Shown one piece after another: positions 1 to 42,939 of a DNA stretch of 64,000 nt; positions within the stretch are counted from its first letter, which is position 1; each line of letters begins with the position of its first letter. Position numbers and translations under genes: made by a program. Source of the stretch: Tubulanus polymorphus. Lineage: Eukaryota; Animalia; Nemertea. The stretch is taken from positions 14,557,807 through 14,621,806 of the forward strand of contig NC_134031.1 of NCBI RefSeq assembly GCF_964204645.1. The letters are read 5' to 3'. The notes beneath the pieces are model-generated. The model was not told the origin of the DNA and searched no databases. It saw only the letters and a program-made list of their open reading frames with translations.

Positions 1-131
1 ATGTAGTCATCTTCTGGAATATAGTATTCCTGAAGACATAAATTAGAATCAAGTCGAAAAAGTTTTTTTCTTAAGTCGGATTTCATGCCATCATTACAAA
101 ACGGACTGTCTTATAATGAGGAAAACATCGG

Positions 132-175
132 TATTTCTGAAGACGACTATTAGAATAAAGTCGAAACGTTGAATA
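132..175 (+). ncRNA. Minimal type-I hammerhead ribozyme motif, family 1 copy A (Penelope/retrozyme type)
   Basis: TATTT-CTGAAGA-C-GACT(attagaataa)AGTC-GAAA-CGTT-GAATA: stem I UAUUU/GAAUA, full core, stem II GACU/AGUC, palindromic ACGU stem III, GUU cleavage triplet. Confidence 0.75.
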
Positions 176-261
176 AACTACTAGCTCAAGGAAACATTTC
201 AGTTTTTTGAGTTGGAAGTCGAATATTATGCTATCATTATTTAAAACGAGGACAACATCGG

Positions 262-305
262 TATTCCTGAAGATGACTATAAGAATAAAGTTGAAACGTT
301 GAATA
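262..305 (+). ncRNA. Hammerhead ribozyme motif, family 1 copy B
   Basis: TATTC-CTGAAGA-T-GACT..AGTT-GAAA-CGTT-GAATA; perfect stem I, G-U closing pair in stem II; 130 bp after copy A. Confidence 0.7.
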
Positions 306-380
306 AACAACTAGCTCAAGGAAACATTTCAGTTTTTTGAGTTATTATGCTATCATTATTTAAAACGAGGACAACATCGG

Positions 381-424
381 TATTCCTGAAGATGACTATG
401 AGAATAAAGTTGAAACGTTGAATG
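381..424 (+). ncRNA. Hammerhead ribozyme motif, family 1 copy C
   Basis: TATTC-CTGAAGA-T-GACT..AGTT-GAAA-CGTT-GAATG; 119 bp after copy B. Confidence 0.68.
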
Positions 425-468
425 AACAACTAGCTCAAGGAAACATTTCAGTTGTTTGAGTGGGAAGT

Positions 469-640
469 TTTTTTCATTAAAAGTATACCCCCCTTTGGGG
501 TCCCTTTTTGTCCTTTTTCTTTACTACGCTTTACAGTGTAGAAGTACTTTCTGTAACTTTTCTTTTATGTAATAGTGATGACTGTATTTCTGTATTGTAT
601 CTCTTTAGTGAAGAAATAAACTTATTATATTATATATTAT
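469..640 (+). mobile_element. Probable 3' tail of a non-LTR retrotransposon inserted in the hammerhead array
   Basis: Interrupts the unit sequence ggaagt|cgaatattatg; ends with AATAAA (615-620) plus a TTA/TAT-rich tail; AGT on both sides. Confidence 0.5.
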
Positions 641-685
641 AGTTGAATATTATGCTATCATTAATGAAAACGAGGACAACATCGG

Positions 686-729
686 TATTTCTGAAGATGA
701 TTATAAGAATAAAGTTGAAACGTCGAATG
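686..729 (+). ncRNA. Hammerhead ribozyme motif, family 1 copy D
   Basis: TATTT-CTGAAGA-T-GATT..AGTT-GAAA-CGTC-GAATG; GUC triplet, weakened stem II. Confidence 0.6.
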
Positions 730-809
730 AACAACTAGCTCAAGGAAACACTTCTCGGACTCTTTTTATTCGTATCGTGGGATTCTATTTCATTTTCTAA
801 AACACTTAC

Positions 810-3800
810 TGAGTACTTTCAGTTTGACGCGACCCATCGCGGTTCCAGCGTTATTCTGAGCGATACAAATATAAGTGTCGCCGTCTTCGAGTTGCACGTT
901 CTGCACTTCTAACGAACCAGACGGAGCCACCGCGTAACGCGGAACCGAGTTTAGAACGATCGTTCCTTTCTGCCACGTGATTCTCGGTCGCGGTATCCCC
1001 GTCGTTTGACACGGCAGCGATATCGAGTCGTCGACGGTTACTTGCATTTCTAACGGGGTCGGCGATTGAATCTTCGGCGGAACTTAAAACACAAATCGAT
1101 AAATGAAATGGTGAATGATAATTCAGGATTTCGTTCCGCACGGTGGCGCCACTTTCTGCCAATTTACAAATTCCCTGAGTTTTCCACATGATTACAAAAA
1201 AGTGAATCAGAGAAATTTTATAGGTTTAAAATGTTACAATTCGTTCATTGTTCATCAAATCACGTATTGATAAAGAAACACGCCGTCAATAGCACTATCC
1301 AAATTCCCAGAGTTTTCCAGGTTTTTTGCAAAATTTGTTAAATTCCCTGAGTTTCCCCTGATCTATGCGAGAATTTTCAGGTCACCCTGTTTCGTAATGA
1401 GGTTTTATCGCAAGAAACAACGACTTTCAAAGCTTCATCATTCTTATATAGCCAGGCCCTTAATTACTAAATGTCAATTTAATTTTTGGAACTTTTGATC
1501 TGTTTTAGGGCCCGCAGGGTGGCCACTTATATTTTGATTTGCTTTTTCCCTGATTATTCTCCGACACGCACTTTGTTTCCCCCCCCCGAGTTGATCTGCT
1601 AAGAATCCAATCGATTAAAACACAGTCAAATACCTAAGACATAGATGGAAATTGTTTGATTTTATGCACAATCTAACAATCACAACGTATTTCCCTGATT
1701 TTAAGCTATTTTACAAAATTCCCTGACTTTTTCAGAACGAAAGAAATTTTCCTGATTTCAAGGTAAGTGGCCACCACCCTGGCTCAGTATTTCTATATTG
1801 CTACGTATTCCACAAACACTCACTCTGTACGTCAAGTCTGATATTACGACTGACTTCACCAGCCTCATTCTGAGCTGTACACTGATACATCGCCGTGTCG
1901 TCCAATCGAACGGAAGAGAATTCCAACGATCCCGAACCGAGCATCCGGTGTCGCGGTCCTTGAGTCGCGAACGGCTCTCCGTCTTTCTCCCAACGGACGT
2001 CCGGATCCGGGATTCCGATCGCGTCGCATAGCAACAGCGTTCGAGAGTTGATCGTAGCTTGCACGAGGGTCGGGCCGTCCTCTTCGATACTGGGAGGTAC
2101 TACAAAGGTCAAGGTCATTGTTAATCATTCGTATCGCTTTTTAGAATTTTTAAATTTTCGATGATTCATCGGTTAACCCTTTCAGTGCTGGCTTATTAAT
2201 ACCCTATAGTGCTGAAGATAATTTGAAAATTCTGAAAAATTCCACCCTAGTGTGTTGAATAACGGGAATACCACTATAGTGTGTCTACACTGCGGCGCGG
2301 TGTATCATTAGTTACTAATATTTCACTGTTTGACAGGTGCCATCTTTCAAGAGAGATAATTAGTAATTACTAATCAAATCAATACACCGCGGTGCGGTGT
2401 ACTAGCAAAATCCATCACCGATTCATACACCGCACTGCAGTGTAGACGCACTGAAAGGGTTAAGACTCACCTAATACTCCAACAATGAACTGTTTGCTGA
2501 CGTTACCAGCAGGATTCGAAGCTTGGCAACGATATCTACCGATATTCAATAAATGAGCTCCGACAATGTGTAACTGTTGACCACTGTTTATGAATCGTAA
2601 ATTCGGGCTGCTTAAAACGGACAGACGGTCGTCGGAGTGATACCACTGTATCGTCGGAGTCGGTATTCCCGACGCAGGACAGTCTAACACTAAATTGCGG
2701 TTCTGGATTACGGAAAATTCTTCCAGTTTCCCTGAGCCGTTGATTTTAGGCGGAACTGAAAAGGTAACGTTTAAAATCTGTGGATCTGAATCACTTCTTA
2801 CCTTCCATAAAACGCAGCTTCCCCGGCATACAGTTCAAGTCTTCCAAAGACAAATGTTTCATCCAGTTCCAGCGAGTAACAAGATCCCCCCTTCCCCGTA
2901 GCCAGGATCGTCAAACCCAGTCAAACTCCCCAATTATTTTAAGTCTCTCAATGACTGTTAAATTTCCCCCAGATTCAATGAGCAAAACCATCGACCTAGT
3001 TCAAGCTCACCCCTCCCCCGATCCAGTTCAGTACCCGCCACCATCCAGTACCAGTCTCTCAGTAGTTAAGAGTTGTACTTACCGAACACATCAAGTGAGA
3101 AGTATTTCTCTACCTCCCCGGCTGGATTATGAGCTCGACACGCGTACTGCGATCGGTCCTCTACGTGCGCCGATAAAACCTCCAGTACCTGACTATCCTG
3201 CGTTACCTGCATGTGCGGGTTACTGTCTAACAACAACGGAGCTCCGTCGCGGTACCACGTAACCAACGGTTTCGGAACGCCCGTTACTAAACATTTGATC
3301 TTGATAATGCGACCCCTGACGACCGAGATATCCTCTCTCTTGTTGCCTTCGATTAGAGTCGGAGGAACTGAAATCACGCAACAATTTAAAACCATTTGTT
3401 GTAGGGGAATCAATCAGTGAACAAAATGTTTTTAGAATTTAAAATATTCCATGAAATCACGCATTTGTATCCAACAACAGATTTCGGTGTTAAACTAAGC
3501 CCATATACAACTGTAGCCTGAACTGTAGCAGGCTACGAGTTAAAGGGTCCAATTTTACGAAGCTAATTACATTGAGTTTCGATGATTGAATATTCATTGA
3601 AAATAACGTCGTCGTTGAAGATTAATGGTAATTCTATTCCATGAAAACTGAACCGGATGAAAACAATAGTCGTTTGTTACTTTTTACTCTTGAAGCAAAT
3701 AAGAATTAGTTCAATAGTAAACAAAACGCCAAGGATCTGCGATTCTCAATTAGTTACCTTGTCGCTATATTGTGTATATAACTGTACGATAAATTAATTT

Positions 3801-6800
3801 TTGAAAATGGCTCATGGAATGGAGTGGAAACATCAGAATGTAACTAAGTTTTTCTTCTTACTGTGGGTTTTATCAACTACGATCTGCAATGTTCGCTTTG
3901 ACGTTTTGTTTACTATCGACACTCGAGACATTTTCATCACCGGATTAGAAATAGTTCATGTTCTAAGGTTTTAACCTTAGTCACATTTTACCGAGAAATA
4001 TAACACTGTGGACTTACTTAAAACTTCCAGTTTAAAGGAGCGTTCCACGTAACCGGCTACGTTAGTGGCCATACACGTATACAGGGCAGCTTCCGAGATC
4101 TGAGCGTTAGAAACGTGTAACTGACGACCGCTGTTTAATAATTTCAAATTCGCTGACGGGAGATCCTGCATCGGTATCTTATTCTTCAGCCATATAAACG
4201 AAGGCGGTGGGCTACTCGAGGCCGGGCATTCGATGTATATACTACGATTCTGTATAACCCTCGGGTTGAAATTTAGATTGCGGTCATCAATAGAGGGCGG
4301 CACTGTAAAAATAATAGAGATGTCGTTGATTGTATCCAAGAATAAGGACTCTAATAATTCAACGAAAAACTTGCACCAAATCTAACGAACTCAGACCAGG
4401 ACCCAGTTGCGTATAGGTGACTTGCATCCAAAAGTGGTCTTCCAATGACTGGTCTTAATTTGTGAGGCCGACCTATGCCCGGCTTTAGATTGGTTATAGA
4501 ACCAAACTGAGCTTAGACTGGTCTTAAGTTGTAAGATTGGTTAGAACCAAAGTGAGTTTAGACTGGTCTTAAGTTGTTAGATTGACTATAGAACCAGAAT
4601 GTGCTTAGACTGGTCTTAAGTTGTTAGATTGACAATAGAAACTTTAAGCCATGGTCTTAAAGTTGTTAGATTGACTATATAACCAGAATGAGCTTAGACT
4701 GGTCTTGACTCTTTGCCTGCCAGGCCTATTTTTCAGGAAATGCTGCGCTTTGCCACGATTTCCGTGTTTTTCAGAGATTCATAAAACTAAAACTAGAAGA
4801 GATATCTTCATCAAATTTGTTTTATTTTGTTTATCTGGTCTTGCTTTTTCATGTAAAATAAGCAGCATTTCTTCTAAAAATGATAAAATCTGTAGCAATC
4901 ACCTGTGCATAGGGGGTATTTTGCATAAAATATGCCCATTCATGCGTGTTCAGACCCCATTTCAATAGATGACGTCACTAACACATTGCATAGAAAGACT
5001 GATGATAGTTTGTTTTAGTAGTAAAAGCATTAAACTAACTGGTGTTGTGCGATGAATTCGCCATCTATCGTTACAGTTAAGAAACAAGTCAACCGTACCA
5101 GTGCGGTTGTGGCAGGCAAGTGATGGGAGATCTCGAACATACCAGTACATTTTTGACAGGCAATGAGTTAAGTTGTTTGATTGGTTATAAAACCAAACTC
5201 AGCTTAGACTGGTCTTAAGTAGTTAGATTGGTTATAGAACCAAACTGAGCTTAGACTGGTCTTAAGTTGTTAGATTGACAATAGAACTAAATTGAGCTTC
5301 GACTGGTCTTTAAGTTGTTAGATTGACTATAGAACCAGAATGAGCTGACTGGTCTTAAGTTGTTAGATTGGTTATAGAACCAAACTGAGCTTAGACTGGT
5401 CTTAAGTTGTTAGATTGACTATAGAACTAAAATTAGCTTAGACTGGTCTTAAGTTGTTAGATTGACTATAGAACCAGAATGAGCTGACTGGTCTTAAGTT
5501 GTTAGATTGGTTATAGAACCAAACTGAGCTTAGACTGGTCTTAAGTTGTTAGATTGACTATAGAACCAGAATGAGCTTAGACTGGTCTTAAGTAGTTAGA
5601 TTGGTTATAGAACCAAACTGAGCTTAGACTGGTCTTAAGTTGTTAGATTGGTTATAGAACTAAAATTAGCTTAGACTGATCACAAGTTGTTAGATTGACA
5701 GTAGAACTAGATTATGTGACTTTTGAAGTGAGCCTTCAACCTTCAGAGTTATTTTGAGATGAAGTTTATTGAGGTCAAGGTGAAACTTACCGAGCACTTC
5801 AAGGTCGAATGTACGGCTCAATTCACCGGCGTCGTTACTAGCGATGCACGTATATCGACCGCTGTCCGTTACTTTAGAATGCGCTATAGCGACCTGTTTA
5901 CCGACCACATCGATGACTAAACCGCCCTTAGACACGAGAGAGTAGCCATCTTTTAACCAGCGTACTTTAGGCGGAGGTACACCGGCGACCGGACACTCCA
6001 AGATCACCGTTCTGTTCATTATTACTCTCGGGTTGTCGACGATGTTCGCGTCATCGATTGTCGGAGGAACTGAAACGGTAAACAATACCCCAGGAACATA
6101 TGAACTCACAATAATGGAGACCGTTGGAGTTTGCAGAATTCTTACCGATGACTTGCATGTTGAAATCTAGTTTCACGTTTCCGGCTCGGTTACGAGCGAT
6201 ACACCGGTATTTCCCAGAATCCTCGATCATCGTGTTTAGAATCTCTAACTGACGACCTTGAGCCAGAGCGTTAAATCGAGGGTCGGACAATGTGATTGGA
6301 TCATCAGCCTACGGACAAATGGACAGATTGAATTGAGTTTAATCTATTTTTATATCATGTACGTAATGCAGAACGAGTTTGAAAATATCAAAAAACAATT
6401 AAAACAAAACATAAAATTTGAAAAAAAAAAGATTTAATTCATCAACTTGTTTCTGATTCAAATAAACTAAATATTCTCCAAAAACAAACTGAAGACACAA
6501 CAGTCAACCCTTAACACTTACCACAATTATTCCTTAATTCTAAGCAGCTTGTAATTCATAGAAACAGACAAAATGTACATAAAAATATGTATGGATAACA
6601 TATTTGAGAGCTATGCTCTTCTAAGTGGACTTCATTTTTATTGTTCTGAGTGTTGTGTTTGATGTCCTAGAATCATAGGTCTGATGTCTGGGAGGAGGGA
6701 TATCTGGGGGAGAGGGGATTTCTTGTCCTAGAAACATAAGACTAATATCCAAGTAGAATTGACTTACCTTGTACCATGTGATATTAGGGAAGGGAATTCC

Positions 6801-9800
6801 CATTGCCGGACAGTTCAGGATCATTAAACGACCTTTAATGACCTTGGGAAATAAGTCTACATTGTTACCGTCCAAATATGGTGGAACTGAAAATTTCAAA
6901 TCGTGTAGAGTTAACCGTGAAAACTGTGACTTAAAGTAAGAATGAGTTCATTAAACTGCACCTAGTTCCACAGTTGTGGCTTAGAATTTATTGTCAGTTA
7001 AATTCATTGGCAAATTTCAAACTCAATAGTTCTAGTTGAACCCAGAACTGTAGAACTGGATCCTGTGTGAGATGTAAGAATTCAAAAATAAATCAATGAA
7101 TTGTATTCAATCAAAGTTGATGTTGAAATAATCTTAGGAATTCATCGTACCTAAGACATCTAAATCGAAGTCTAAGTCACTTGTACCGGCTTTGTTTGTA
7201 GCGATACACGTGTACCGGGCGCTGTCCGTCGTACGGGCTTTAAATATCTCTAACTGCGTCCCTTCGCCGTGGATACGCACGTGCTGCCCGGATTCTAGCG
7301 GGATTCCGTTCCGTAACCATTGGATTTGCGGTTCGGGAGTTCCCTTTATGGGACAATACAGAACGATGGAATCATTAGCGTTGACATCAGGAGTTCGATT
7401 CAGGTATGTGTCATCAACGTGAGGTGGAACTGAATGAAAATAACAGGAATATGATGACGATGACGATGACGATGAAATACTACCTATGTAGCGCCAATTT
7501 CACCGATTCACTGTTTAAAGGGGCTTTTAAGTATCAATGGTAGATCACAATATCCGTGATAAAACGATACGAGTAAAATCTCACAATAAAAGAATTAGAT
7601 GATAAAATGTTTATTAAAATATATAAGAAATATTTCGGGTGGTTACTACCACCCTTCTTCAGTCTAAAAATGACTTTTTAGTGACTTTTTATTGTGGGAT
7701 TTTACTCGGGCTTTTAAGTAATCCGGTGAACAGGAGGAGTCTTTTTTCTTAATCAGTTTCATGACAGATATTTAGTGGGGCGTCCAAAAGTGTGAGCAAG
7801 AAATTTGAAAGACAGTGCTTGTGCTAACAAACTCTTGAGCTACTGTGGCTCATGGTAGTTTAAGTAAGATTGATACAAACCTAGGACAGACAGTCGGTAA
7901 TCCTGTTCAGCAGATCCTGCCTCATTGACAGCTCGACACGTATACCTGCCCGTATCTCTAACGGCAACGCGTTTGAATTGCAGTTCCTGTCCGTTCTTTT
8001 GTAAAGCTATATTCGGCCTACTAACATCAAGAGGACGACCCTCCTTATACCAGGTGATGTCCGGAGCAGGAATCCCTGTCGCTGGGCACTTGATAACGAT
8101 CGACCGATTGACGACCACCTCGATATCGACGAGACTGATCTGATACGAATTGATTTTCGGCGGAACTGAAAACACAGATCAAAACAATCATTGTTCCCGC
8201 GGTAACACAAATTCAAAATTCCTTAATTTTTTTTCCAAATATTTCAAATATATGTATTTCAGATAACCCAAATGCAGATACTGTCATACTACAGGGACGC
8301 AAACATTTTAGTGGTAACTGGTTGATTAAGGTGGCTTTCCTCTGGCAAATGCTACATGAAGTGTAAAATGAATTTCCAGAATAGAAGAAAATCATATCAT
8401 ATCAATATTTCCAAACAGGGAAATATCATCATGAAATTTCCAAGTTTGCCGCAATTTCCCGGTAATGTAGGAACCATGAACGGGTCAACCTAAACTCTCG
8501 CATAAAGATTCTTCCCACATGTATAATGCCCCTAGTTTATATCACATCAGTATTCCTGAAGATGACTATGGGTATAGTTGAAACATTGAAAAAACTACTG
8601 GCTCATGGAAACATATTGGACTCCTTATATTCTGTGTGCAGGGATTTTATATCATCTTTACCACGCGAACTCAGAGTGTTTCATCCATGGTTAAAATAAG
8701 GACAACATCAGTATTCCCGAAGATGACTATTAGGATTAAGTCGAAACGTTGAATAAACTACACCAGCTCTAGGAAACATTTCAGGCTTTTACTTAGTGCA
8801 GGATTTTATTGTTTCTCCCTTGAAAGCAGCTCCAACCCTGCACCCCTCACGAATAAACACGGTACATACCCATAACGTTGAGACTGAAATCGAGGCTGTC
8901 GTCTCCGGCCGTGTTCGATACTTTACAGGTGTATAAACCGGAATTCTCAATACGAGCGTTGATCACTCTCAACTGTCGACCTCCAGCGAGCAGACGCAGA
9001 TTCTCATTACCCTCAACTTCGAGAACTTTATGATTTCTGTGCCACGTGATCGTCGGAGGCGGTACTCCGACGGCGGGGCAACTGATTATCGTAGATCGAC
9101 CAATCACAACCGACGGATTTGTATTTGTACTTCCGACATCAATTTCAGGCGGCACTAAAGACAGGATCAGGATATGGCAATTTCAGACGGGTTTTAAATT
9201 CAGGTAACTTCCAGGGCCAAATTTCACAAAAATGATTTAGGCCTAAATGGATTTAAGATAAACTGAACTAACGAAGAAATTAAACCGATTTAAGAGTTAA
9301 ACCTTTTTGTATAACTGGACCCTGGGCAATAGATACAATAACTTAGCTCTGGACCCAGTTCTACAGTTCTGAATCCACTTCCACAGCCCAGAACCCAGTT
9401 CCACAGTTGGACCTGGGTTCAGAACTGTGTTAACGCTGTAGAACTTGGCTCAGAATACTGGAACTGGGTTAAGACTGCGAAACTGGGTCCAGAACAGTGG
9501 AACTGGGTTCAAAACTGTGGAATTCATTGGTTTTTATTTTGAATTACAAAAACACAAATGTTGGAAAAGTTGACATGGTTTCCTCAAACCCTTATTTCGG
9601 GTGTTCAGTAGGAAACTAAACAGGGATTGAGGTTTAAAACTTACCAAGCACACTAAGATCAAAGTATTTTTTTGATCTTCCAGCGACGTTCTGAGCTTCA
9701 CAGGAATACCTCGCCGAGTCGGTCGGAGCCGTGAATCTAATTTTTAATCGATGCCCATGGTCGATTATTAATATTTTCGACGTATTTTTTGTGATCAATT

Positions 9801-24800: not shown

Positions 24801-27800
24801 TATACAAACAAATCTTTCTCAATTACAAACTATTAAAATTGGCTAAAATAAACCGAAATAAACTGGTTTGTTTGTAAGATTTGTTTGTATACCTCTATGT
24901 TGTTCTTTGTTTTATACCCGATGAGGGGAAATGTTCCTGAAAACGTTTTGTTAACAATAATTTTCAAAATGTTGCCGAGGATTATCTATGAAACCGGGGC
25001 CTGAATGTAGGTATGAATACTGTACCTTTAGGATCGACGAGTATAACTTGAGGTAGTTCTCCGCTCAGCGATACCGTGATATTCGGCAGTTTCGAATCTA
25101 TAGGTAATTCTATAGACTCTCGTCCGCTCTTCAAATCAACCGACAACACGTTCACTTTCCTCGACTGTACAGCTACCTCGACAAAATTCAACACCTTTCA
25201 AAAAAAAAAAACGAAGTATAATAATCATAAAAGTAGGTTCCCATTGACAAGAGACGGTCCATCCGTAATTCTATTGAAGTAAAACAGGGTGCGATCACTT
25301 GTCCGAAGACCCAGGGCTATTTCAGTTTATTTTCATTAGGGTAAGTAGGTTATCATAGCTAGTGTAATGTTATGTCTCAAAGTTTTTTTTATTTGTCCAC
25401 CGGGCTAGTGTAATTTTAAGCCTCAAAACCTTTTTACTTGTCCACCGGGCTAGTGTAATTTTATGTCTCAAAGCTTTTTTTACTTGTCCACCGGGCTAGT
25501 GTAATTCTATGCCTCAAAACCTTTTTACTTGTCCACAGGGCTAGTGTAATTTTATGCCTCAAAACCTTTTTACTTGTCCACCGGGCTAGTATAATTTCAT
25601 GTCTCAAAACCTTTTTACTTGTCCACCGGGCTAGTGTAATTTTATGTCTCAAAGCTTTTTCCAACTCGATATAACCAAGGGCTATAAGTAATGAATTTTT
25701 TCAGTAACATTTAATTGAAATATGACAGAAAATGTTCAAATTAATCAGTAATCAACGGGAAGACCCTTAATAACACTTTTCCTATTTCTGTACGCATCAA
25801 ACATATATAATCAGTATTTCTCTGGATAAAGTAGTAACAAATACTGAAAATCATGAACAGTTGGCAGCTATGTATAACAGATGATTGTGTCACCAATATG
25901 GACTGGTTGTGTAGGGCAAATTTAGGGCGAAATATCAGATATGCTTGCCCCATGGGCAAGTGGCTTTTATTTCTTAGATTGAACCTGTAAAAACTCATCA
26001 AATTGTGGATAACAACTCAAGAGATTGTAGCGACATTTTAACTCAATAAGCCTTTTTACAGTTTCCAGGCACCATTTTTTTGGGTACCCGCTGGGTCTGC
26101 ATTGTAGAATTTTTTCCCGGGTTAATTTTTTTATCTCGTTCATATCTCTGGATTGTATTAAGATAGAAACAAAGTAAAAATATCGATGAACTCAGCTGAT
26201 AATTTACTTTTTTATGATATCACTCATTTATAAAGTTAACGCAACAATGCGCGCTGGTGAAGTTATAAACATTGATATCGTCTTCCCGATAATTCAACTT
26301 TTGAAACATTTTTTTACTCGCTCCTCTCTCAACTTTTGTTAATAATTGTGACTTATTTTCTTTGACATCACAACTTATCGTTGTTTGAACTATTCAAAAA
26401 AAATATACGTCAGTAATTAGAGCAATCACAATGTACGTAACACATATTTCTATCTATTAGAAAAACAATTATACGATCATCCAATTACATACTTATCAAC
26501 TTTAACCACACAAGACTTAAATATGAGTGCAATTTGATCAGCAAAAAGGTTATAGATCAAAATGATTCAGTTTCAAGTATGCTATTTAGAGCCCTTTCAC
26601 TTAGAGCTTACTCTTCAAGAAAATTGAATATTCTGCTTAATAGTAGAAGATTTCTGCTGTCAATGTGATGGAAAAATGTTTGAGCAGAAAGGCAGAAACT
26701 TCCAAACATTGCAATGGAAAGAGAAAATAGATAATTCCCCTTTGGGAAGAGCATAATCAAACAGAGCCTAGAAATATCAACACAAAAAAACTAGGTTCTC
26801 AAATTCTTGGTTCTGGATTATGAAGTTATAACGGTTGAAATTAACTGATTTTAACTCTTCACATCAACCTTGACCGAGAACTGTGGAACCGAGTCCTGTT
26901 GGTTTTTTACTCATAGCTAGACGTATCGGCCCCACTCCGCGCGGTTGCGCCACCGCGCAGGATTTACGCGAAGCAGCAAACACAAACATGGCCACTGCGC
27001 TCAATTTTCAATGATAGAAATCGTGTGTACATTTAGATTATTTCGGCTGTTAGGGTTTTAGGGCACAATATAAGTTGATGATGTGATATGGCGATGTTAA
27101 TTAATGATAATTCCGCAGTGAAGCTAGTCACGAACGGTGCCGATTGAGTGTACAGCTGCCAAAAACACTGAAATGTGCGTAGTTGCGTAACTATTTGCAG
27201 TGAATTGCAGACGAAACATGAAGCCTTAACGGCCGTTTAAAAAAAAATTATACCAACTGCAATTGCAAAGTTAAAATTCTGGGCATTTCTAAAATGTTAT
27301 TACTAATTTTTAGTCAGTGCCGAACGTTTAGTTTTCCAACAATAATGAGGGGTGGTAGGTAGTCATGCAATTAAAGTCATCATTTATTACACGTTACTTC
27401 CGTGTTGTTGAAAATCTCGTGAGTCCTGGACCAAACCCCAATGAACAATGTGGTCTGTGTGCTGGCCACAAATGCACACAGATCACACTACACTACCCAT
27501 TACAAACTCCAGTACCCACAGCTTTCATATATCCATCCAAATATTTAGAGTGTCTTTCTTCCTGGATTTCGAGGTAAAGCCTCGGTGGCGAGAGTCCTAG
27601 CAGTAACATACCTGATTGACTTGTGATTTTTTCAATAAGAAAACCTGTCCAGAACTCGTGGCTGCGATCGTCTCGTACGCTTTAAATCCAGGAGCAGACG
27701 TATTACCACAATCACCGGTCATTACAAACACTACCTGTTAAAACAACACAAATACAATAGTTACTGAGATGGATATACAAGGGTATGGTAGGAGCGCGGC

Positions 27801-30800
27801 ACTGGGAGCACAGGGGTAGGGTAGGAATGCGGCACTAGGGTCACAGGGGTAGGGAGCGCGGTATAGGGTCACAGGGGTATGGTAGGAGCGCGGTACTGGG
27901 AGCACAGGGGTATGGTAGGAGCGCAGTACTGGGAGCACAGGGGTATGGTAGGAGCGCAGTACTGGGAGCACAGGGGTAGGGTAGGAATGCGGTACTAGGG
28001 TCACAGGGGTAGGGAGCGCGGTATAGGGTCACAGGGGTATGGTAGGAGCGCGGTACTGGGGTCACAGGGGTATGGTAGGATCGCGGTACTGGGAGCACAG
28101 GGGTAGGGTAGGAATGCCGTACTGGGGTCACAGGGGTATGGTAGGAGCGCGGTACTGGGAGCACAGGGGTAGGGTAGGAATGCGGTACTGGGGTCACAGG
28201 AGTATGGTAGGAGCGTGGTACTGGGGTCACAGGGGTATGGTAGGAATGCGGTACTAGGGTCACAGGGGTAGGGAGCGCGGTATAGGGTCACAGGGGTATG
28301 GTAGGAGCGCGGTACTGGGGTCACAGGGGTATGGTAGGAGCGCGGTACTGGGGTCACAGGGGTATGGTAGGAGCGCGGTACTGGGGTCACAGGGGTATGG
28401 TAGGAATGCGGTACTGGGGTCACAGGAGTAGGGTAGGAATGCAGTACTGGGGTCACAGGGGTATGGTAGGAATGCGGTACTGTCTAACGATTAAGAGACA
28501 TGACAGTGAAATTACGCGCACTCACCGGGGATCGAACCCGGGTCTTGTACGTAGAAAGCAAGCATGCTAGCCAGTAGACCAATAGAACTAGTCCACTTGA
28601 CCAGTGGTTATACAGCTTGTCCAATATGCGTATAAACTGGGGTCACAGGGGTATGGTAGGAGCGCGGTACTGGGGTCACAGGGGTATGGTAGGAGCGCGG
28701 TACTGGGGTCACAGGGGTAGGGTAGGAATGCGGTACTGGTTACCTGTTAAAACAACACAGATACATTAATTACTGCATGCCCAGTTGGGTTGGAAACATA
28801 ACTGTGTGCCCAGTAGGTACTGCATTAATGTGTAGAGCATTTCGGTTTAGATCGGGCACGATACTGGGTGTCCAGGGGCCGGCATGGTACTCGGTGTCCA
28901 GTTAACCTTGATGTTCTGGACCATAGGGATTGGGCATGGTGCTGAGGGCCAGGGAAGGGCACATTACTCCTGGGCAATAACTGCATGCCCAAGGGTTAGG
29001 CCTTATACCTTTCGCTAATGCTGAATTAATTTACCCTTGCAGCGATAAAACAAAAAGACATAATGAGATATATATAGAAATTTGGAATCTGCATTAATAA
29101 TTGAAAATTCTAACAACGTTGTAAACCTAAACAATGGTTTTTCACCCCATAATAAACTTATATCTAAATTCCTCTGTAAACTGGTTAAACTCAACACTTG
29201 ATTCCCCTTTGATTATTTGTTATTTGTTCTCTCATCTATTTTTGTCTCTCAACTTGTATTCACCATTGTTTTAATTTAAGTGCCCCCTAGTTTGTCTTTT
29301 TACTACTGATTTCAAGTTCTAATTTATATTTATACTCACTTATTGTTGTTTATAATTACCCCTTAGTTTGCTTCCCTTCGATCTATTTTAGCGTGTAACT
29401 GTTTCTACGTTAATTTTCCTTTAGTTTGTATCATCTCTGATTACTTCAATTAGTCTCTTTGTCTCTGGATTGTATATATATATCTCATTATTTTTTGTAG
29501 TATCTCATTATTCCTGAAGATGACTATTAGGATATAGTCGAAACGTTGAAATAAACTACTATCTCGAAGTTTCATTTTCGGACTTTTTCGTTATAATTGT
29601 GGGATTCTCTCTACATCGCGTCAACACGGATATAGTGTTCTATCAATCGTGATCATAAACCTTGATTTTCCTTGATATATCTTGTATCATTACTTGCTAT
29701 ATGCTAAGATGAAAGTAATGGACATCTTAATCAATTTGGCTACTGATATTCGATATGAAAATAATGACTGACATTATTTCTTCTAAGTATATGATACACC
29801 ATTAGACACATATCACAGTGGATTCTAAACTTGTGGTAATAAACAGTTCCAGTTTGTGAGCTCAGAATGAGGGGTTTAATTAAAGATGATAAATAAACGG
29901 AATGAGATGAAAAGATAAAAACCCACTATGTACAAATTAGAAGAATTTTAAGATAAATTCTCGATTTTAGAATTATTTTAATTTGTACATATAAGTAGGT
30001 TTTTATCTTATTATCCATTCACCAAGTTTGAGTGTGGTTATTGTGGTTATTGTACTAGAATGAGATGAAGATTAGCTAATCCGTTTAGATAAACATATTG
30101 ATAACTTCGGCATACTGGAATGACACTCCTCACTCTCCCCCACGCAGATTCCTGTTGGGATTTCTAGATGTGAATTCCGGGAAGACTCATTCTTTCAATT
30201 CTAGGAATTGTTTATCTCGTAAGACGAGAGATTCCCATGAGAGTTTTACGAAGCAGATGTAAAGAGAATGAATGACTCAACTCTAATAGAACTCTCATGT
30301 CCTACAACTCAGGATCAAACCTGGAAGAATTATACAACCGCAGGTGCTGAGAAATTTGCTAAATCTAAAAAAGTTCTTTCAACGAATTTCCTGAAACCTT
30401 GAACTTTAGTTTATCGGGGAGGGGGTATTCTAGGTCCAGGGCCCAGTTTCATGAAATAGTTTAAACTTTAGACGGGACTAAGTTTAGATTTTTTGTAGTT
30501 ATCGAAAAGATGAAGTATATAATAAGGCCCTGTATTCCTTGGGCCCAAACACTAGGCATTGTGTTCCTCGGTCCAAACACTAGGCCCTGTGTTCCTTGCC
30601 AAAACACTAGGCTCTGTATTTTTTGGTCCAAAAACACTGAGCCCTATTTCTCAGACCAAACACTCGGTCCAAATGCTCCGTGTTCTTTGGCCCAAACATT
30701 GGGCTCTGTGTCCCTCTGCCCAAACATTGGGCAGTGTCCCTCTGCCCAAACATTGGGCTCTGTGTCCCTCAGCCCAAACACTGGGCTCTGTGTCCCTCGG

Positions 30801-38261: not shown

Positions 38262-41200
38262 TGCATCAGGATTCGAACCCATGAACCCTGAATTTATGAG
38301 GGACCAGTGAAAAACTGACTGACTGACTGACTGCTACCACCAGGATTCAAATACATGAACCCTGGATTGATGAGAGACCAGTGGAAGACAGGCCGACTGA
38401 CTGCCACCAGGAATCAAACCCATGAACCCCGGACTGATGAGAGACCAGCGAAAAACTGACTGACTGACTTCAAACCCACCAGGATTCAAAACACATAAAC
38501 AGGCTTAGCTCTGAAAGCCTATTATATCAATAAATTCAATAAGTTCGACAAACTTTTAGCTTTCTTTACTTTAAAAATGTTGTCCCGACGCCTCGCTGTA
38601 CCGAAATTAAGTTCAATGAGACAAGAGAATTTTTCTACAACTCCATTAAAAAATACAAAAAGACTTTCAGAAAAACACCAGAATTCTTCGAAACGGAAAA
38701 CAATTTTCATCGGGGAAGAGACAGATTTGTACTGACACAGACTGCGTCTAAATCACTGCGAAAAAAACAAACCCCCAAACTCAACTTTATCTATTCATCC
38801 TTCACTACGTAAGAATAAATGAATTTTCCTAGAAACGTAGAATTCGGAACATGTGTCAGAGAGAACAGCCCTACTAACCCTGACCCCCTCAGACACGAGT
38901 TCAAAAATAGGCTTTGAGACTAAGGGCAGGTTCTACAGACTGGTTTCATCCGAACAATCAATTTTTCATAATTTCGACTCATTATGTCGTCGAAATTCGA
39001 CTTATTATGTCGAGTTTTCTTTTTATATCAAATTTCAGGTAAAAAAAGGCGAATTTCGTGTTATTTTAATGTCAACTTATTATGTCGAAATTCTACATAG
39101 AAATAACTCGAATTTCTACATAAAAATAACTCAAATTTCTACATGAAAATAAGTCGAATTTCAACATAATTAACTCTAAATTCGACACAAGTCGAATTTT
39201 GACATGATTAACTCAATTCGACATGAAAAGAAAACTCGAAATTCGATATAATACGTCGGGATTTCGAGTTTTCTTTTCATGTAAAATTTCGACTTGCCTC
39301 GATTTTTGAGTTAATTATGTTGAATTTCGTGTTATTTTTATGTCGACTTATTATGTCGAAATTCGACCTAAAAATAACTCGAAATTCGACATAAAAGTAA
39401 CTTGAATTTCGACATAATTAACTATTATGTCAAAATTTTACTTTTTATGTCGAAATTCTGCTTATGTCAAAATTCGACATAAGTCGAAATTGTGGAAAAA
39501 TTATCTCGTATGTCACCAAGGGGCTTCCGTAGGTTCTAGACTGAACTCGGTTAAAAATCTCGTATCATATTTTCCGTTAAAAAGATCGTTCAATTTCTCC
39601 GTATAAAATTGCCCGAGTGAACATTTACCGCGATGGACCCGAGATAGAAAAACCCTTTGAAGAGAGAACGAGACAACCAGACACCTCACAAAGCTGACTG
39701 ATCAACGAAGCTTAACTTCCAATCTGTGTCGATCAAAAAGGCACAGCTCTATGCTCCAGTGATTTAGGATATGTCCATCCAAGGTCCCATCTTAAAATTC
39801 TGGTCGACCAACGCATCAAATGATATTTTCTACGCCGATATCTTCAAGGGCGAATTATGCGTTCGATCGAGGGAAGAAAAAATTTATGATTCGTTTCCTT
39901 TTTTACCAAGCAGGAAATAAAGCGCGCGGTTTCTATTTCAACAGGAATCGAAGCATTTCCTGATAAAAACGATTAGATAAATGACTGTTACGTGAGTGAT
40001 TATATATATATATAGATGATCAATGTCGCTCTAGGTCTCGTCGGTTCCATCATCATCGGCATTTCCGTCAATTGACGGGGAGAGGAAACGTCGACCTAAT
40101 TAACGACTTTGAAGTGTTTTATTTGATAGATTTGCACCGACATATTTCAGCTACTACTGACCCAGTCGTTAACTTGCACGAAGTCACTACTCTACTTCTT
40201 AGTACAATCAACTCTCTCTTGAATGTGTACGTTGTGGTTGAAACCAATACATCTTTAATCAAGGTGGATAATCCTCAGTGGATAATCCTCTACTGGTGGA
40301 TAATCCTCAACTGGTGGATATCATTGATATCATCCAGGTGCGGATTCAGACTTAATTTTTGTAATCAGGGACTCATAATTCGGGCTGAAAACCGAGATTA
40401 CCTCATCGAGCCCCATTACAAAATACGTAACCAGAATTATTATGTATTTAAATGATTTTGTACGGAAATAAATGATCTTTATCTGTTTATAGGTTATTGA
40501 CACTTATTGATTGGGAGAAACTGGCAAAATTCTCAATTGTTTTTCTCACAAATTATCAGGTCAAGTTGCACAGCTTAGATTTAAGTCCAAAGTTGCCAAA
40601 ATTCTTAAAACCAGTCTTAAGTTGTTAGATAGGCTAAAGAACCAAACCAAAATGCGCTTAAAACCAAATGGAGCTAAAACTGGTCTTAAGTTGTTAGATT
40701 GATTATAGAACCAAAATGAGCTCAGACTGCTCTCAAGTTGTTAGATTGACTATAGAACCAAAACGAGCTTAGACTGGTCAAGATGAGACCCGTCTTAAGC
40801 TGTTAGATTGGTTATTCAATCAAAATCAGCTTAGACTGGTCTTAAGTTGCTAAGATTGGCTATAGAACCAAAATGAGTTTCTATAGACTGGTCTTCATCC
40901 ATGTAGCTGACCTTAGAAGATTAGATCATAATCAAACAAACAAGATTAGGTAATGCCATAGGGGCCTATATAAAAGTATTCAAATCAATAACTTCATAAT
41001 TTCTTATGTCAAATGTTCACAATCAATTCATATTTTCATGCCCAGTAAAATAATGATTTGTTTCCGACGAAATAGAGAGCAATGATTCAGCGATCTGTTA
41101 GTTGAACTGAGTGAACTCCTGATCAGTAAAAACTATACTAGGGTTCCCGGGTTCCGCTGATCTCTAAGAGTACTAGACCTAGACCAGTGTAAAGTTGCAC

Positions 41201-42939
41201 CGAAAAACTGGCTGTTATCATAAGGTTATGCGTACTGTATTCATACGACATACCTCGGTCTCATCACCGTCGAAACGAGTATCGGTTTTACCTCACAGAA
41301 AACATTTTCGTATTTCGTTTAAAAACAAATTTCGCGGCGCTGCCTCTCAAAACAGAGTGAAAAGAATTCAACCAATAAATTCTTTTCAAAGACGCATAAA
41401 AATCAACATCTGTGTCACGGTTTTAGTCAACACGAAAATTGTGAAATCTATCAATCTTTTCATGAAGGGTCTGCTAAACATTTTTGACTCGTCAATTTTT
41501 ACCCAAGTCTTGAAATCCTTTCTTATTGGACACAATAGAATCAAACTCTTTAGGTAGGCCTATAAATCGAACCTGTCAATCAGGTTTTCAATTAACCAGA
41601 TTTCATTATAGTTAGAAGACCTCGGAGCCAGCCAGTTCTAAAAAGTCTTCCTAAGGTAGCTAAACTACATAATTAGAATCAAACTCTTCAGGTACTGCTA
41701 TAAATCTAACCCGTAACTCAGGTTTCCAATGGACAAAATTTCATAATAGATACAGGACCCTCCGAGCCAGCCAGTTCTAAAAAGTCTTCCTAAGGTAGCT
41801 AAACTACATAGGCCTAATTAGAATCAAACTCTTCAGGTACTCCTATAAATCTAACCCGTAACTCAGGTTTTTAATCAACCAGATTTCATAATAGATACAA
41901 GACCCTCGGAGCCAGCCAGTTCTAAAAAGTCTTCCAGGGTAGGAAAACTACATAATTAGAATCAAACTCTTCAGGTACACCTATAAATCGAACCTGTCAC
42001 TCAAGTTTTCAATTAACCAGATTTCATAAAAGATACAAGACCCTCCGAGCCAGCCAGTTCTAAAACGTCTTCCTAGGTAGATTAACTACATAATTAGAAT
42101 CAAACTCTTCAGGTACTCCTATAAATCTAACCCATAACTCAGGTTTTCAATGGACCAAATTTCATAATAGATACAAGACCCTCTGAGCCAGCCAGTTCTA
42201 AAATGTCTTTCTAGGTAGATAAACTACATAATTAGAATCAAACTCTTCAGGTACACCTATAAATCGAACCTGTCACTCAAGTTTTCAATTAACCAGATTT
42301 CATAAAAGATACAAGACCCTCCGAGCCAGCCAGTTCTAAAACGTCTTCCTAGGTAGATTAACTACATAATTAGAATCAAACTCTTCAGGTACTCCTATAA
42401 ATCTAACCCATAACTCAGGTTTTCAATGGACCAAATTTCATAATAGATACAAGACCCTCTGAGCCAGCCAGTTCTAAAAAGTCTTTCAAGGTAGGTAAAC
42501 TACATAATTACTTAATGGAGGTAAAAGACTCGAATTAAAAATCCCAGACATCTCGCAGGTGCGGAGCAGGATTCCGTCTTTTTTTTATATGAAATATAAC
42601 GAGCGCGCGGGCGGCTGCTGATATTGACTCACCGGGATCGTGGAATGGCACTAATACGTAGTTATACAAAGGTTTATCCCTCCTCGCGAGGGTCGTCCTC
42701 AGAATTTTCGCCGCTCCCTCGATCACCTGTAACAGGTCGTCATACATCGAACCGGTGACGTCGAAAACGAACGCCATCGTCGCCGAACCTTGTGGAATGT
42801 GATTCTTGTCGTCGACGGCGATCGCAGCGGAGTTTCGTTGACGTTGACAGGCGACGAATCCGATCAGAAACAGCATCGACAACAAAACTGACCGTTTCGA
42901 CGTTGCTGCGACAACGGTCATTTTTAAACGCATCGTCAT
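810..42939 (-). CDS. HMCN1: Hemicentin-1-like extracellular matrix protein, 5' part (signal peptide, VWA domain, 23 tandem Ig domains; gene continues past left edge)
   Basis: Exon 1 encodes a hydrophobic leader then [14 protein letters not shown]...[11 protein letters not shown]; exon 2 has [12 protein letters not shown]...[12 protein letters not shown], the hemicentin VWA signature; then repeated I-set Ig units (VPP..C...G.P.P.I.W....D.G.Y.C.A.N.AG). Exons, all GT-AG and phase-consistent: 42633-42939, 33728-33957, 27612-27734, 25026-25194, 23817-24041, 22798-22985, 21688-22027, 21132-21315, 20497-20588, 19192-19467, 18114-18238, 17417-17558, 16890-17069, 16699-16794, 15757-16029, 15039-15317, 14485-14633, 14288-14408, 13010-13306, 11548-11823, 11048-11350, 10227-10511, 9645-9929, 8870-9154, 7881-8165, 7151-7429, 6768-6886, 6146-6308, 5791-6069, 4018-4302, 3083-3367, 2471-2755, 1824-2099, 810-1082 (about 2586 codons). 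Confidence 0.96.
2177..2459. mobile_element. piggyBac-like MITE, copy 1
   Basis: TTAA-CCCTTTCAGTGC...GCACTGAAAGGG-TTAA; homologous copies at 18597-18884 and 34102-34374. Confidence 0.9.
4480..5710 (+). repeat. 47-bp tandem repeat carried by a dispersed MITE family
   Basis: Unit gcttagactggtcttaagttgttagattggttatagaaccaaactga; the family recurs at about 22350-22450, 40560-40895 and, reversed, 53917-54617. Confidence 0.9.
4709..5167. mobile_element. TTAA-targeting (piggyBac-like) non-autonomous element nested in the 47-bp array
   Basis: TTGA-CTCTTTGCCTGCCA...TGACAGGCAATGAG-TTAA, inserted at the ggtcTTAAgttg site of the host unit. Confidence 0.75.
7624..7667 (-). ncRNA. Minimal hammerhead ribozyme motif, family 2
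   Basis: Minus strand TTAGA-CTGAAGA-A-GGGTGGT(agta)ACCACCC-GAAA-TATT-TCTTA: intact core, 7-bp stem II, palindromic AUAU stem III. Flanked by an inverted repeat at about 7570-7592 / 7686-7708. Confidence 0.7.
8545..8810 (+). mobile_element. Dimer of family-1 hammerhead-bearing monomers (both motifs mutated)
   Basis: Cores at 8556-8562 (followed by GAAACATT) and 8717-8723 (CCGAAGA); spacing 161 bp. Confidence 0.7.
11961..12508. repeat. Long inverted repeat (250-bp arms, 48-bp spacer)
   Basis: 11961-12210 is the reverse complement of 12259-12508; the outer ~212 bp match without a visible mismatch and the inner ~38 bp have about 5 mismatches. Confidence 0.95.
12601..12839. mobile_element. GGGCCAGTT-terminal MITE (Harbinger-like, CAG flanks) with a related MITE nested at about 12696-12806
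   Basis: TIR gggctccagttgctcaaaatttggt / accaattttgagcaactggccc, CAG on both sides; relatives at about 10681-10790, 10853-10977, 14861-14985 and 47843-47969. Confidence 0.75.
13405..13814. mobile_element. PIF/Harbinger-like MITE, GC-rich
   Basis: TAA-AGGTAGGGACACACGAGCG...CGCTCGTGTTCCCCTACCT-TAA; 3-bp TAA target duplication; internal aaattcgcc repeats. Confidence 0.85.
15460..15740. repeat. Degenerate ~24-30 bp minisatellite
   Basis: Repeated agggtccaggctgcaggttgtcc units next to the exon 15 donor. Confidence 0.85.
16338..16658. mobile_element. Non-autonomous DNA element; second, reversed copy at about 32150-32412
   Basis: TIR ctgttctccgca / tgcggagaacactg; internal sequence shared with 32150-32412. 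Confidence 0.7.
17136..17390. repeat. 20-bp minisatellite
   Basis: (ttgttgaaatgtcgttgtaa)n, about 12 copies. Confidence 0.9.
18597..18884. mobile_element. piggyBac-like MITE, copy 2
   Basis: TTAA target duplication, CCCTTTCAGTGC TIRs, colinear with 2177-2459. Confidence 0.9.
18982..19164. mobile_element. Tc1/mariner-pogo-like MITE
   Basis: TA-CAGTGGAACCTCGTTATA...TATAACGAGACGTTCCACTG; second copy at 46607-46780. Confidence 0.8.
19955..20393. mobile_element. Non-autonomous element with internal 56-bp tandem repeat, nested in another MITE (about 19919-20441)
   Basis: Ends catggctgtcaac / gtcggcagctctg; 56-bp unit about 5 times; related copy at about 25690-25870; an uninterrupted host-family copy lies at about 50850-50956. 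Confidence 0.65.
24143..24528. repeat. 130-bp tandem repeat, about 3 copies
   Basis: ggaatggtataatctgtaaacctgatagaagcggccggta recurs at 24171, 24301 and 24431. Confidence 0.92.
24714..24960. mobile_element. Inverted pair of pseudo-LTR-like halves, each with a degenerate hammerhead core (family 3)
   Basis: Minus arm TATAC-CTGATGA-GGGGAA(atg)TTCCC-GAAG-ATGTTC (24755 to 24725); plus arm TATAC-CCGATGA-GGGGAA(atg)TTCCT-GAAA-ACGTTT (24913-24948). Confidence 0.6.
25286..25987. mobile_element. CAGGG-terminal non-autonomous element with 45-bp internal tandem repeats
   Basis: 45-bp unit ttgtccaccgggctagtgtaattttatgcctcaaaacctttttac about 6.5 times; a compact relative with a clean 16-bp TIR lies at 56210-56453. 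Confidence 0.7.
27778..28738. repeat. G-rich 30-bp minisatellite
   Basis: (ggtcacaggggtatggtaggagcgcggtactgg-like)n, about 27 units with 26-bp variants, interrupted at about 28483-28615. Confidence 0.95.
28517..28590 (-). mobile_element. tRNA-derived sequence (SINE head or tRNA pseudogene)
   Basis: Minus strand has A box TGGTCTACTGG and B box GGTTCGATCCC with T-arm CCGGG/CCCGG at tRNA spacing; acceptor and anticodon stems are poorly paired. Confidence 0.65.
29509..29553 (+). ncRNA. Hammerhead ribozyme motif, family 1 solo copy with intact core
   Basis: TATTC-CTGAAGA-T-GACTAT(taggat)ATAGTC-GAAA-CGTT-GAAATA; 6-bp stem II. Confidence 0.75.
30525..31032. repeat. 28-bp minisatellite
   Basis: (gggctctatgttcctcagcccaaacact)n, about 18 copies. 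Confidence 0.93.
34102..34374. mobile_element. piggyBac-like MITE, copy 3 (opposite orientation)
   Basis: TTAA-CCCTTCCAGTGC...GCACTGAAAGGG-TTAA. Confidence 0.88.
35795..36315. repeat. Polypurine GA-rich tandem tract
   Basis: About 520 bp of nearly pure A/G; ~39-43 bp unit gaggagacagggaggggatggagagaggaggggagagaaa. Confidence 0.95.
37220..37388. mobile_element. Harbinger-like MITE; second copy at 58885-59040
   Basis: TIR GGGGTCATTCATTTATTACGTACGCATTA / TAATGCGTACGTAATAAATGAATGATCCC, ATA on both flanks. Confidence 0.85.
38135..38495 (-). repeat. Tandem tRNA-like (B-box) units interleaved with (CTGG)n and (CTGA)n microsatellite
   Basis: Four to five units of caggattcgaacccatgaaccctggattgatgagagaccagtg (minus strand GGGTTCGAATCCTG B box); about 18 CTGG repeats at 38187-38260. 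Confidence 0.7.
38934..39531. mobile_element. Foldback-like non-autonomous DNA element with 5-bp target duplication
   Basis: GGTTC-TAC...GTA-GGTTC; imperfect long TIRs; many internal gtcgaaattcgac repeats in both orientations. Confidence 0.65.
41537..42510. repeat. 138-bp satellite-like tandem array (7 copies) in HMCN1 intron 1
   Basis: agaatcaaactc recurs at 41537, 41675, 41820, 41958, 42096, 42234 and 42372. Confidence 0.95.

Follow-up and report, generated by a model that had tools for sequence, protein, structure and literature searches.

The tandem array at the start of the window, by which we mean the whole 64,000-nucleotide stretch of Tubulanus polymorphus DNA analysed here, is probably (at a rough probability of 0.8) the fossil of one retrotransposition event, namely of a non-autonomous tandem array that derives from a Penelope-like element (PLE) and is akin to the 'non-LTR retrozymes'. 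Judging from its sequence, the repeated motif is a genuine type-I hammerhead in the minimal form known from PLEs; this reading had been put forward in a preliminary description of the window and is borne out by the traits of the motif, its location in PLEs and its covariation. By homology the array is a single, older and internally deleted member of a family with 167-nt units, and the machinery of the window copy is most likely dead.

The hammerhead motif of the array

As search pattern we used CTGAAGA-N-GAYT, a loop of 6-14 nt and ARTY-GAAACGTY. It matches the plus strand of the window at 137-170, 267-300, 386-419 and 691-724, and once more at 29514-29547. Thus, the array holds four copies and the whole window five, compared with none in 100 dinucleotide shuffles. 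The predicted cuts in the array fall after window positions 170, 300, 419 and 724 of the plus strand. Helix I consists of 5 bp, with UAUUY as its upstream strand (132-136 in the first copy, and correspondingly in the others) and GAAUR just past the cut (171-175 and so on). One extra unpaired base is located between A9 and G10.1; unit 1 has a C there, the other three a U. All four units read GAAA-CG-U-H and are devoid of a loop 3; as ACGU is self-complementary, helix III can form only in a dimer. The core, comprising C3-U4-G5-A6-N7-G8-A9, G12-A13-A14, A15.1/U16.1 and an H17 that is not G, is intact in four of the four units, which retain 13/13 invariant bases. Hence the two stems (UAUUY/GAAUR and GAYU/AGUY), the extra base, the GAAA box, the ACGU palindrome and the GUU or GUC triplet are all present as the preliminary description had given them.

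The Rfam hammerhead models (RF00163 Hammerhead_1 and others) returned no match in the whole window at gathering score and none in window 1-900 even at E ≤ 10, because these models need an intramolecular helix III, which is absent from the window motif. A covariance model built in this analysis yielded 13 matches at E<0.01 across the window, in keeping with the earlier count of about 12 copies or fragments; the 13 matches represent several independent insertions from at least two PLE families. A printed copy of the hammerhead sequence was not found in the literature.

Layout of the array and its insertion site

Each unit opens with ~50-75 nt from the start of a PLE pseudo-LTR, continues with a short linker and closes with the minimal type-I hammerhead. 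The monomers are arranged head to tail, have a low GC content (0.29-0.33) and contain no meaningful ORF. The array and its surroundings are composed as follows (window positions unless stated otherwise; bit scores refer to the covariance model):

L001:1075-1108, dead unit upstream of the window, reading CAGAAGA...ACAU (CUGA changed to CAGA, ACGU to ACAU)
1-66, plus strand, degenerate unit made up of a short inverted hammerhead fragment (~1-24) and a dead remnant (24-66); 19.3 bits
67-170, plus strand, monomer of 104 nt with hammerhead 1 (5' strand of stem I at 132-136, core at 137-170); 71.3 bits
171-300, plus strand, monomer of 130 nt with hammerhead 2 at 267-300 and a G10.1·U11.1 wobble; 71.8 bits
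301-419, plus strand, monomer of 119 nt with hammerhead 3 at 386-419; 68.9 bits
420-724, plus strand, monomer of 133 nt in two parts (420-468 and 641-724) with hammerhead 4 at 691-724, ending in GUC; 62.8 bits
469-640, minus strand, foreign 172-bp repeat, dispersed and retroposon-like, whose tail on this strand is rich in A
725-790, plus strand, terminal pseudo-LTR at the 3' end of the insertion, without the optional 40-nt 'tail' extension
813-1084, minus strand, host exon encoding an Ig I-set domain (I-set E = 1e-16)

TRF assigns the array a period of 119 with 2.9 copies and 88% matches at window 111-466. The distances from cut to cut are 104, 130, 119 and 305 nt, the last being the sum of the 133-nt unit and the 172-bp foreign insert. 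The four units and their predicted cuts stand as first described, with the monomer size of 119-130 bp refined to 104, 130, 119 and 133 nt. Towards the 5' side the units are degraded: stem II and ACGU are gone from the dead remnant at 24-66, and a further dead unit, that in L001, sits ~100 nt upstream of the window start. The monomer at 301-419 is 98.3% identical to that at 171-300, aside from an 11-nt deletion, whereas all other pairs share 80-93%, a sign that the locus gained one or more units subsequently, through recent duplication of its DNA. The repeat at 469-640 occurs in at least 40 copies genome-wide, many of which are 97-100% identical. It resembles a young retroposon of the SINE type, which would have jumped into a hammerhead array older than itself.

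Altogether the insertion extends over ~1 kb, from about -209 (L001:991) to about window 790. In BLAST alignments to the PLE unit, L001:991-1110 corresponds to the PLE 3'UTR and hammerhead, with 68 nt being 3'UTR, and window 725-786 to the first ~59 nt of the PLE pseudo-LTR. No target-site duplication of the window insertion was recognised, and it is only the 5'-truncated PLE 3'UTR together with the terminal pseudo-LTR that points to a single insertion event. The homology of tail, 3'UTR and hammerhead supports the earlier view that the array is non-coding and of the pseudo-LTR kind, and shows its derivation from a PLE.

Ig I-set exons on the minus strand flank the array on both sides, in agreement with the intron setting proposed from the outset. 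Consequently, the hammerheads are antisense to the hemicentin-like host pre-mRNA and would need transcription of their own. The splice donor of the host exon, GTAAGT (reverse complement at 807-812), and the insertion's end are ~20 nt apart; for annotation, this means that a PLE-derived insertion fills most of a ~1.2-kb intron and reaches close to its donor site. Introns of the same gene also harbour other, unrelated tandem repeats with periods of 47, 33 and 138 nt (window 4485-5709, 40662-40776, 53952-54159; 27777-28739; 41536-42510).

Penelope-like elements carrying the hammerhead

Genome-wide, the pattern occurs 1,866 times, compared with zero for the reversed control, and a scan for GIY-YIG revealed at least 150 PLE copies. 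At L074, three tandem units of 2,856 bp each encode an ORF of 833 aa with RVT_1 (6e-10) and GIY-YIG (1.6e-5) domains; the hammerhead follows ~320 nt after the stop codon and precedes a pseudo-LTR of 103 nt. The search for a Penelope RT/GIY-YIG ORF that had been suggested as a check thus uncovered autonomous PLEs that carry the motif. Among ORFs beside 30 dispersed hammerhead copies, no PLE proteins were found. The pseudo-LTRs of the window array and of the autonomous PLE share 77.8% identity.

Three PLE families possess differing but pairing-competent helices II, namely GACUAU/AUAGUC, GGCUAA/UUAGCC and GGGUGGU/ACCACCC; the palindrome is ACGU in the family with GGCUAA/UUAGCC and AUAU in that with GGGUGGU/ACCACCC. 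In an alignment of 13 sequences, which stand for three independent lineages only, 90% of the cells are paired, as opposed to 30-44% in slid-partner controls. Across the three families, 7 of the 11 pairs in helices I and II are changed on both sides. Within the main family, 1,015 copies equal the 35-nt consensus at every position; deviations are confined to 11 core positions in 130 copies and to 11 non-core positions in 480, a tally that counts copies, not independent events, and is inflated by tandem amplification, with a direction that fits constraint on the core. Moreover, the autonomous PLE and the 167-nt arrays do not differ at all in the 34-nt hammerhead (100% identity), whereas their flanks share 65-78%. 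Conservation of the core and covariation of the stems, the absence of which had been named as evidence against a hammerhead family, are both present at the family level.

Affiliation with the 167-nt family

The 119/130-nt monomer is found at the window locus only, and its best matches elsewhere cover at most 68 nt. With the 167-nt family, the window tail shares 90.6% identity in the pseudo-LTR, and the linker 89%. This family is abundant, with many loci and hundreds of units that are 97-100% identical, and its unit consists of the whole pseudo-LTR, the linker and the hammerhead. Among the copies and matches listed, no 167-nt copy adjoins a GIY-YIG match, and for this reason the 167-nt family looks non-autonomous. 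The 69-nt arrays are likewise young and located at many loci.

The window array shares with the 167-nt and 69-nt arrays the hammerhead, the 5' pseudo-LTR start GAATAAAC..CTAGCTCAAGGAAACA, the linker and the pseudo-LTR end. Unlike these young, multi-locus arrays, it is ~10% diverged, confined to a single locus and marked by internal deletions of its own, which brought the unit from 167 to 130/119 nt. In the preliminary description it was taken for an unannotated retroelement family whose monomer is very short; as a family of its own it is not supported by the data, which point to a ~10%-diverged, deleted copy of the 167-nt family at one locus. The monomer junctions of the 69-, 95-, 130- and 167-nt arrays lie exactly at the predicted cleavage site, and arrays at other loci, too, end in a pseudo-LTR. 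Such an ending is a signature of PLE target-primed reverse transcription begun within the tail (PMC11167929). As a dated fossil, the window array would imply that the 167-nt family had already spread as multimers ending in a pseudo-LTR ~10% divergence ago, and that internal deletions can shorten the units, here to 130/119 nt and elsewhere to 69 nt.

Several observations on related arrays may be added. Dozens of separate 167-nt arrays are concentrated at one end of contig C8 (C8:0.19-3.7 Mb; for example L005 and L006), and further ones are located at C6:22640689, C9:288513 and C10:13420650. An array at C3:27136759 has a spacing of 155-157 nt. The window itself contains a two-unit remnant of the 167-nt family on the plus strand at 8547-8800, with a spacing of 161 nt; one of its cores is mutated to CCGAAGA, and the other has ACAU in place of ACGU.

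Decay of the window copy

In three of the four intact cores, the pair 10.1-11.1 is G·U, brought about by a TCG to TTG change at a CpG; hammerhead 1 is the only array copy with G10.1-C11.1. Helix II of the window copies is reduced to four pairs, followed inwards by an A·A mismatch, compared with 6 bp in the genome's master. In hammerhead 4, stem II is weakened even further to GAUU/AGUU, and the minimum-energy structure differs from the hammerhead fold. The 48-nt window motifs fold with -2.0 to -4.4 kcal/mol (z ~0 versus shuffles), whereas the three PLE master motifs reach -9.3 to -13.1 kcal/mol (z -2.2 to -2.7). For a two-unit transcript, the hammerhead helices account for -3.5 kcal/mol, as against -27.4 kcal/mol for an alternative fold. 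The monomer RNA has minimum free energies of -20.4 and -17.6 kcal/mol (z -0.40 and -0.35), indicating that self-pairing is not high. In the array, conservation of the hammerhead region does not exceed that of the spacer, with 5 of 46 and 4 of 73 columns variable, respectively.

These data suggest that, once inserted, the hammerhead erodes in the manner of neutral DNA and does so chiefly at CpGs. The locus is likely dead because it is old and antisense, has later duplicated one of its units, carries a younger retroposon inside and displays weakened hammerheads. Since four cores are intact, some residual dimer cleavage may nevertheless occur, provided that the plus strand is transcribed.

Comparison with published systems

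The minimal hammerheads of PLEs were described in 2014 (Cervera & de la Peña 2014, PMC4209133) and reportedly also by Lünse et al. 2017 (as cited in PMC6765202). In the 2014 account, helix I has 4-5 bp, and A9 is separated from G10.1 by one unpaired nucleotide. Positions 15.2-16.2 are palindromic and loop 3 is missing, so that two copies pair to form helix III; inverted pairs are frequent, and activity in vitro is low even for dimers (PMC4209133). The window motif conforms to this class in its type-I topology, its CUGANGA/GAAA/UH core, the unpaired base, the ACGU palindrome and the 5-bp helix I. At the level of the family, the position downstream of an RT + GIY-YIG ORF and the frequent head-to-head inverted pairs agree as well. 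It deviates in that helix II has four pairs instead of the published 6-8 (six in the genome's master) and that three of the four copies show G10.1·U11.1 instead of the conserved G-C. Furthermore, the window copies are decayed and part of a non-autonomous array, not of a coding PLE.

Metazoan non-LTR retrozymes were described with monomers of ~170-400 nt (Cervera & de la Peña 2020, PMC7229834), and a recent preprint puts the consensus sequences of retrozymes at 51-972 bp (Li, Clavereau & Pollet 2026 preprint, 10.64898/2026.07.22.740005). With 104-133 nt, the window monomers are below the former range but inside the latter, and short monomers are therefore not new. Like retrozymes, the array is composed of head-to-tail, non-coding and AT-rich monomers with one type-I hammerhead each, co-occurs with autonomous PLEs and has a sequence derived from a PLE pseudo-LTR. 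In classical retrozymes, however, the hammerheads are canonical and make loop-loop contacts, and expression as circular RNAs with a high degree of self-pairing has been shown, whereas the window hammerhead is of the minimal PLE type, the self-pairing of the monomers is not unusual and the single locus is known here from sequence alone. Amplification at several loci, another feature of retrozymes, is absent for the window monomer but present in the parental 167-nt family. Newt satellite 2 and Schistosoma Sm-alpha resemble the array as short tandem or dispersed repeats whose hammerheads, their helix III being unstable, work in dimeric form; in contrast to it, they have canonical helix III stubs and loops, are transcribed and have been demonstrated to cleave. 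The kind of element is thus already known, PLE minimal hammerheads since 2014 and pseudo-LTR-derived non-LTR retrozymes from the 2020 and 2026 studies. Taken by itself the locus matters little, as it is one more eroded case of a well-described class, which unites the minimal hammerheads of PLEs with the non-autonomous tandem arrays derived from them.

Proposed origin and alternative readings

Drawing on the literature on PLE hammerheads and retrozymes for the steps of cleavage and copying, we propose the following origin. In the plus-strand transcript of an active source array, neighbouring hammerheads would pair their ACGU tetrads to build a shared helix III, and each paired hammerhead would cut after H17 to release unit-length RNAs. 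Either these unit RNAs or multimers left uncut could then serve as templates for a PLE reverse transcriptase, which would insert copies elsewhere through target-primed reverse transcription that begins in the pseudo-LTR; this would explain why a pseudo-LTR is found at the end of every array. Later, at the window locus, one unit would have been duplicated at the DNA level and another interrupted by the younger retroposon.

A fortuitous likeness, in which an AT-rich minisatellite happens to contain CUGANGA and GAAA boxes, could appeal to the Rfam hammerhead models, which miss the motif even at E ≤ 10. We consider it vanishingly improbable and reject it in view of the shuffles and the reversed pattern (0 versus 5 and 0 versus 1,866 genome-wide), the fixed place of the motif in elements with RT + GIY-YIG and its covariation. 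A different question is what the hammerhead is maintained for. At the family level it might be kept mainly as a docking structure for the RT/endonuclease and not for self-cleavage, with the arrays representing amplified RT-binding tails. As expected for a shared RT site, the hammerhead is the best-conserved segment between autonomous and non-autonomous partners; in addition, Anolis PLE insertion in vitro survives mutation of the hammerhead core, no Anolis PLE RNA-seq reads end at the predicted cut (PMC11167929), and the cleavage published in vitro is low. Although it is a serious competitor at the family level, we judge this reading unlikely, for three dissimilar PLE families conserve the catalytic core and the potential for pairing, not the helix sequences, and the junctions of the 69-, 95-, 130- and 167-nt arrays coincide with the predicted cut, as if the units arose by cleavage.

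Distinctly unlikely, in our opinion, is that the locus itself is still alive, with its plus-strand transcript being cut by dimers of adjacent hammerheads into products of 119-133 nt that form circles and are able to retrotranspose. The restriction of the monomer variant to one locus argues against such activity, as do the unequal units (104, 130, 119 and 133 nt), which apart from one recent duplicate share only 80-93% identity, the loss of helix II to four weak pairs with G·U at 10.1-11.1, motif folds no better than those of shuffles, and monomer RNAs whose self-pairing is not high (z -0.35 and -0.40). The array is also antisense in its intron and split by a younger insertion, and even as dimers the published PLE hammerheads cleave poorly. 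These points have to be set against the invariant core bases and the palindromic ACGU kept in four units, a tandem spacing that places partner hammerheads 119-130 nt apart, the young 167-nt and 69-nt relatives at many loci, and the presence of autonomous PLEs with open 833-aa ORFs in the genome. It is more improbable still that the 167-nt, 69-nt and 119-133-nt arrays are all transcribed and processed to unit-length circular RNAs with the intronic window locus still contributing; if this were true, the circles would be among the smallest ribozyme-bearing ones in animals, and their hammerhead would be without a helix III of its own. We favour the fossil of a single retrotransposition event as the origin of the window array.

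Other hammerhead insertions

Besides the array and the 167-nt remnant, the window contains, on the plus strand at 29380-29650, a copy of the autonomous PLE that is young and truncated at its 5' end, consisting of 3'UTR, a hammerhead identical to the master, pseudo-LTR and optional tail. On the minus strand at 7560-7720, in a neighbouring intron, the hammerhead of a second PLE family (GGGUGGU/ACCACCC, AUAU) is embedded in a remnant of its own palindromic pseudo-LTR.

Many of the matches listed from the 1,866 genome-wide belong to inverted pairs. Short elements of ~200-270 bp combine two head-to-head pseudo-LTR/hammerhead arms with an asymmetric 40-nt PLE tail (L033:1440-1655, L036:1440-1715, window 46939-47054 and 52941-53049) and are flanked by duplications of 11-13 bp. 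This arrangement corresponds to the known habit of PLEs to insert as inverted copies. A foldback DNA transposon was considered for these palindromic short elements and is less likely, given the asymmetric PLE tail and the 11-13-bp duplications. A tandemised form of the palindromic short element is found in L010:1100-2100 (C12:4086500-4086930), where a 95-nt array has units composed of one sense hammerhead and one antisense hammerhead mutated to CAGAAGA.
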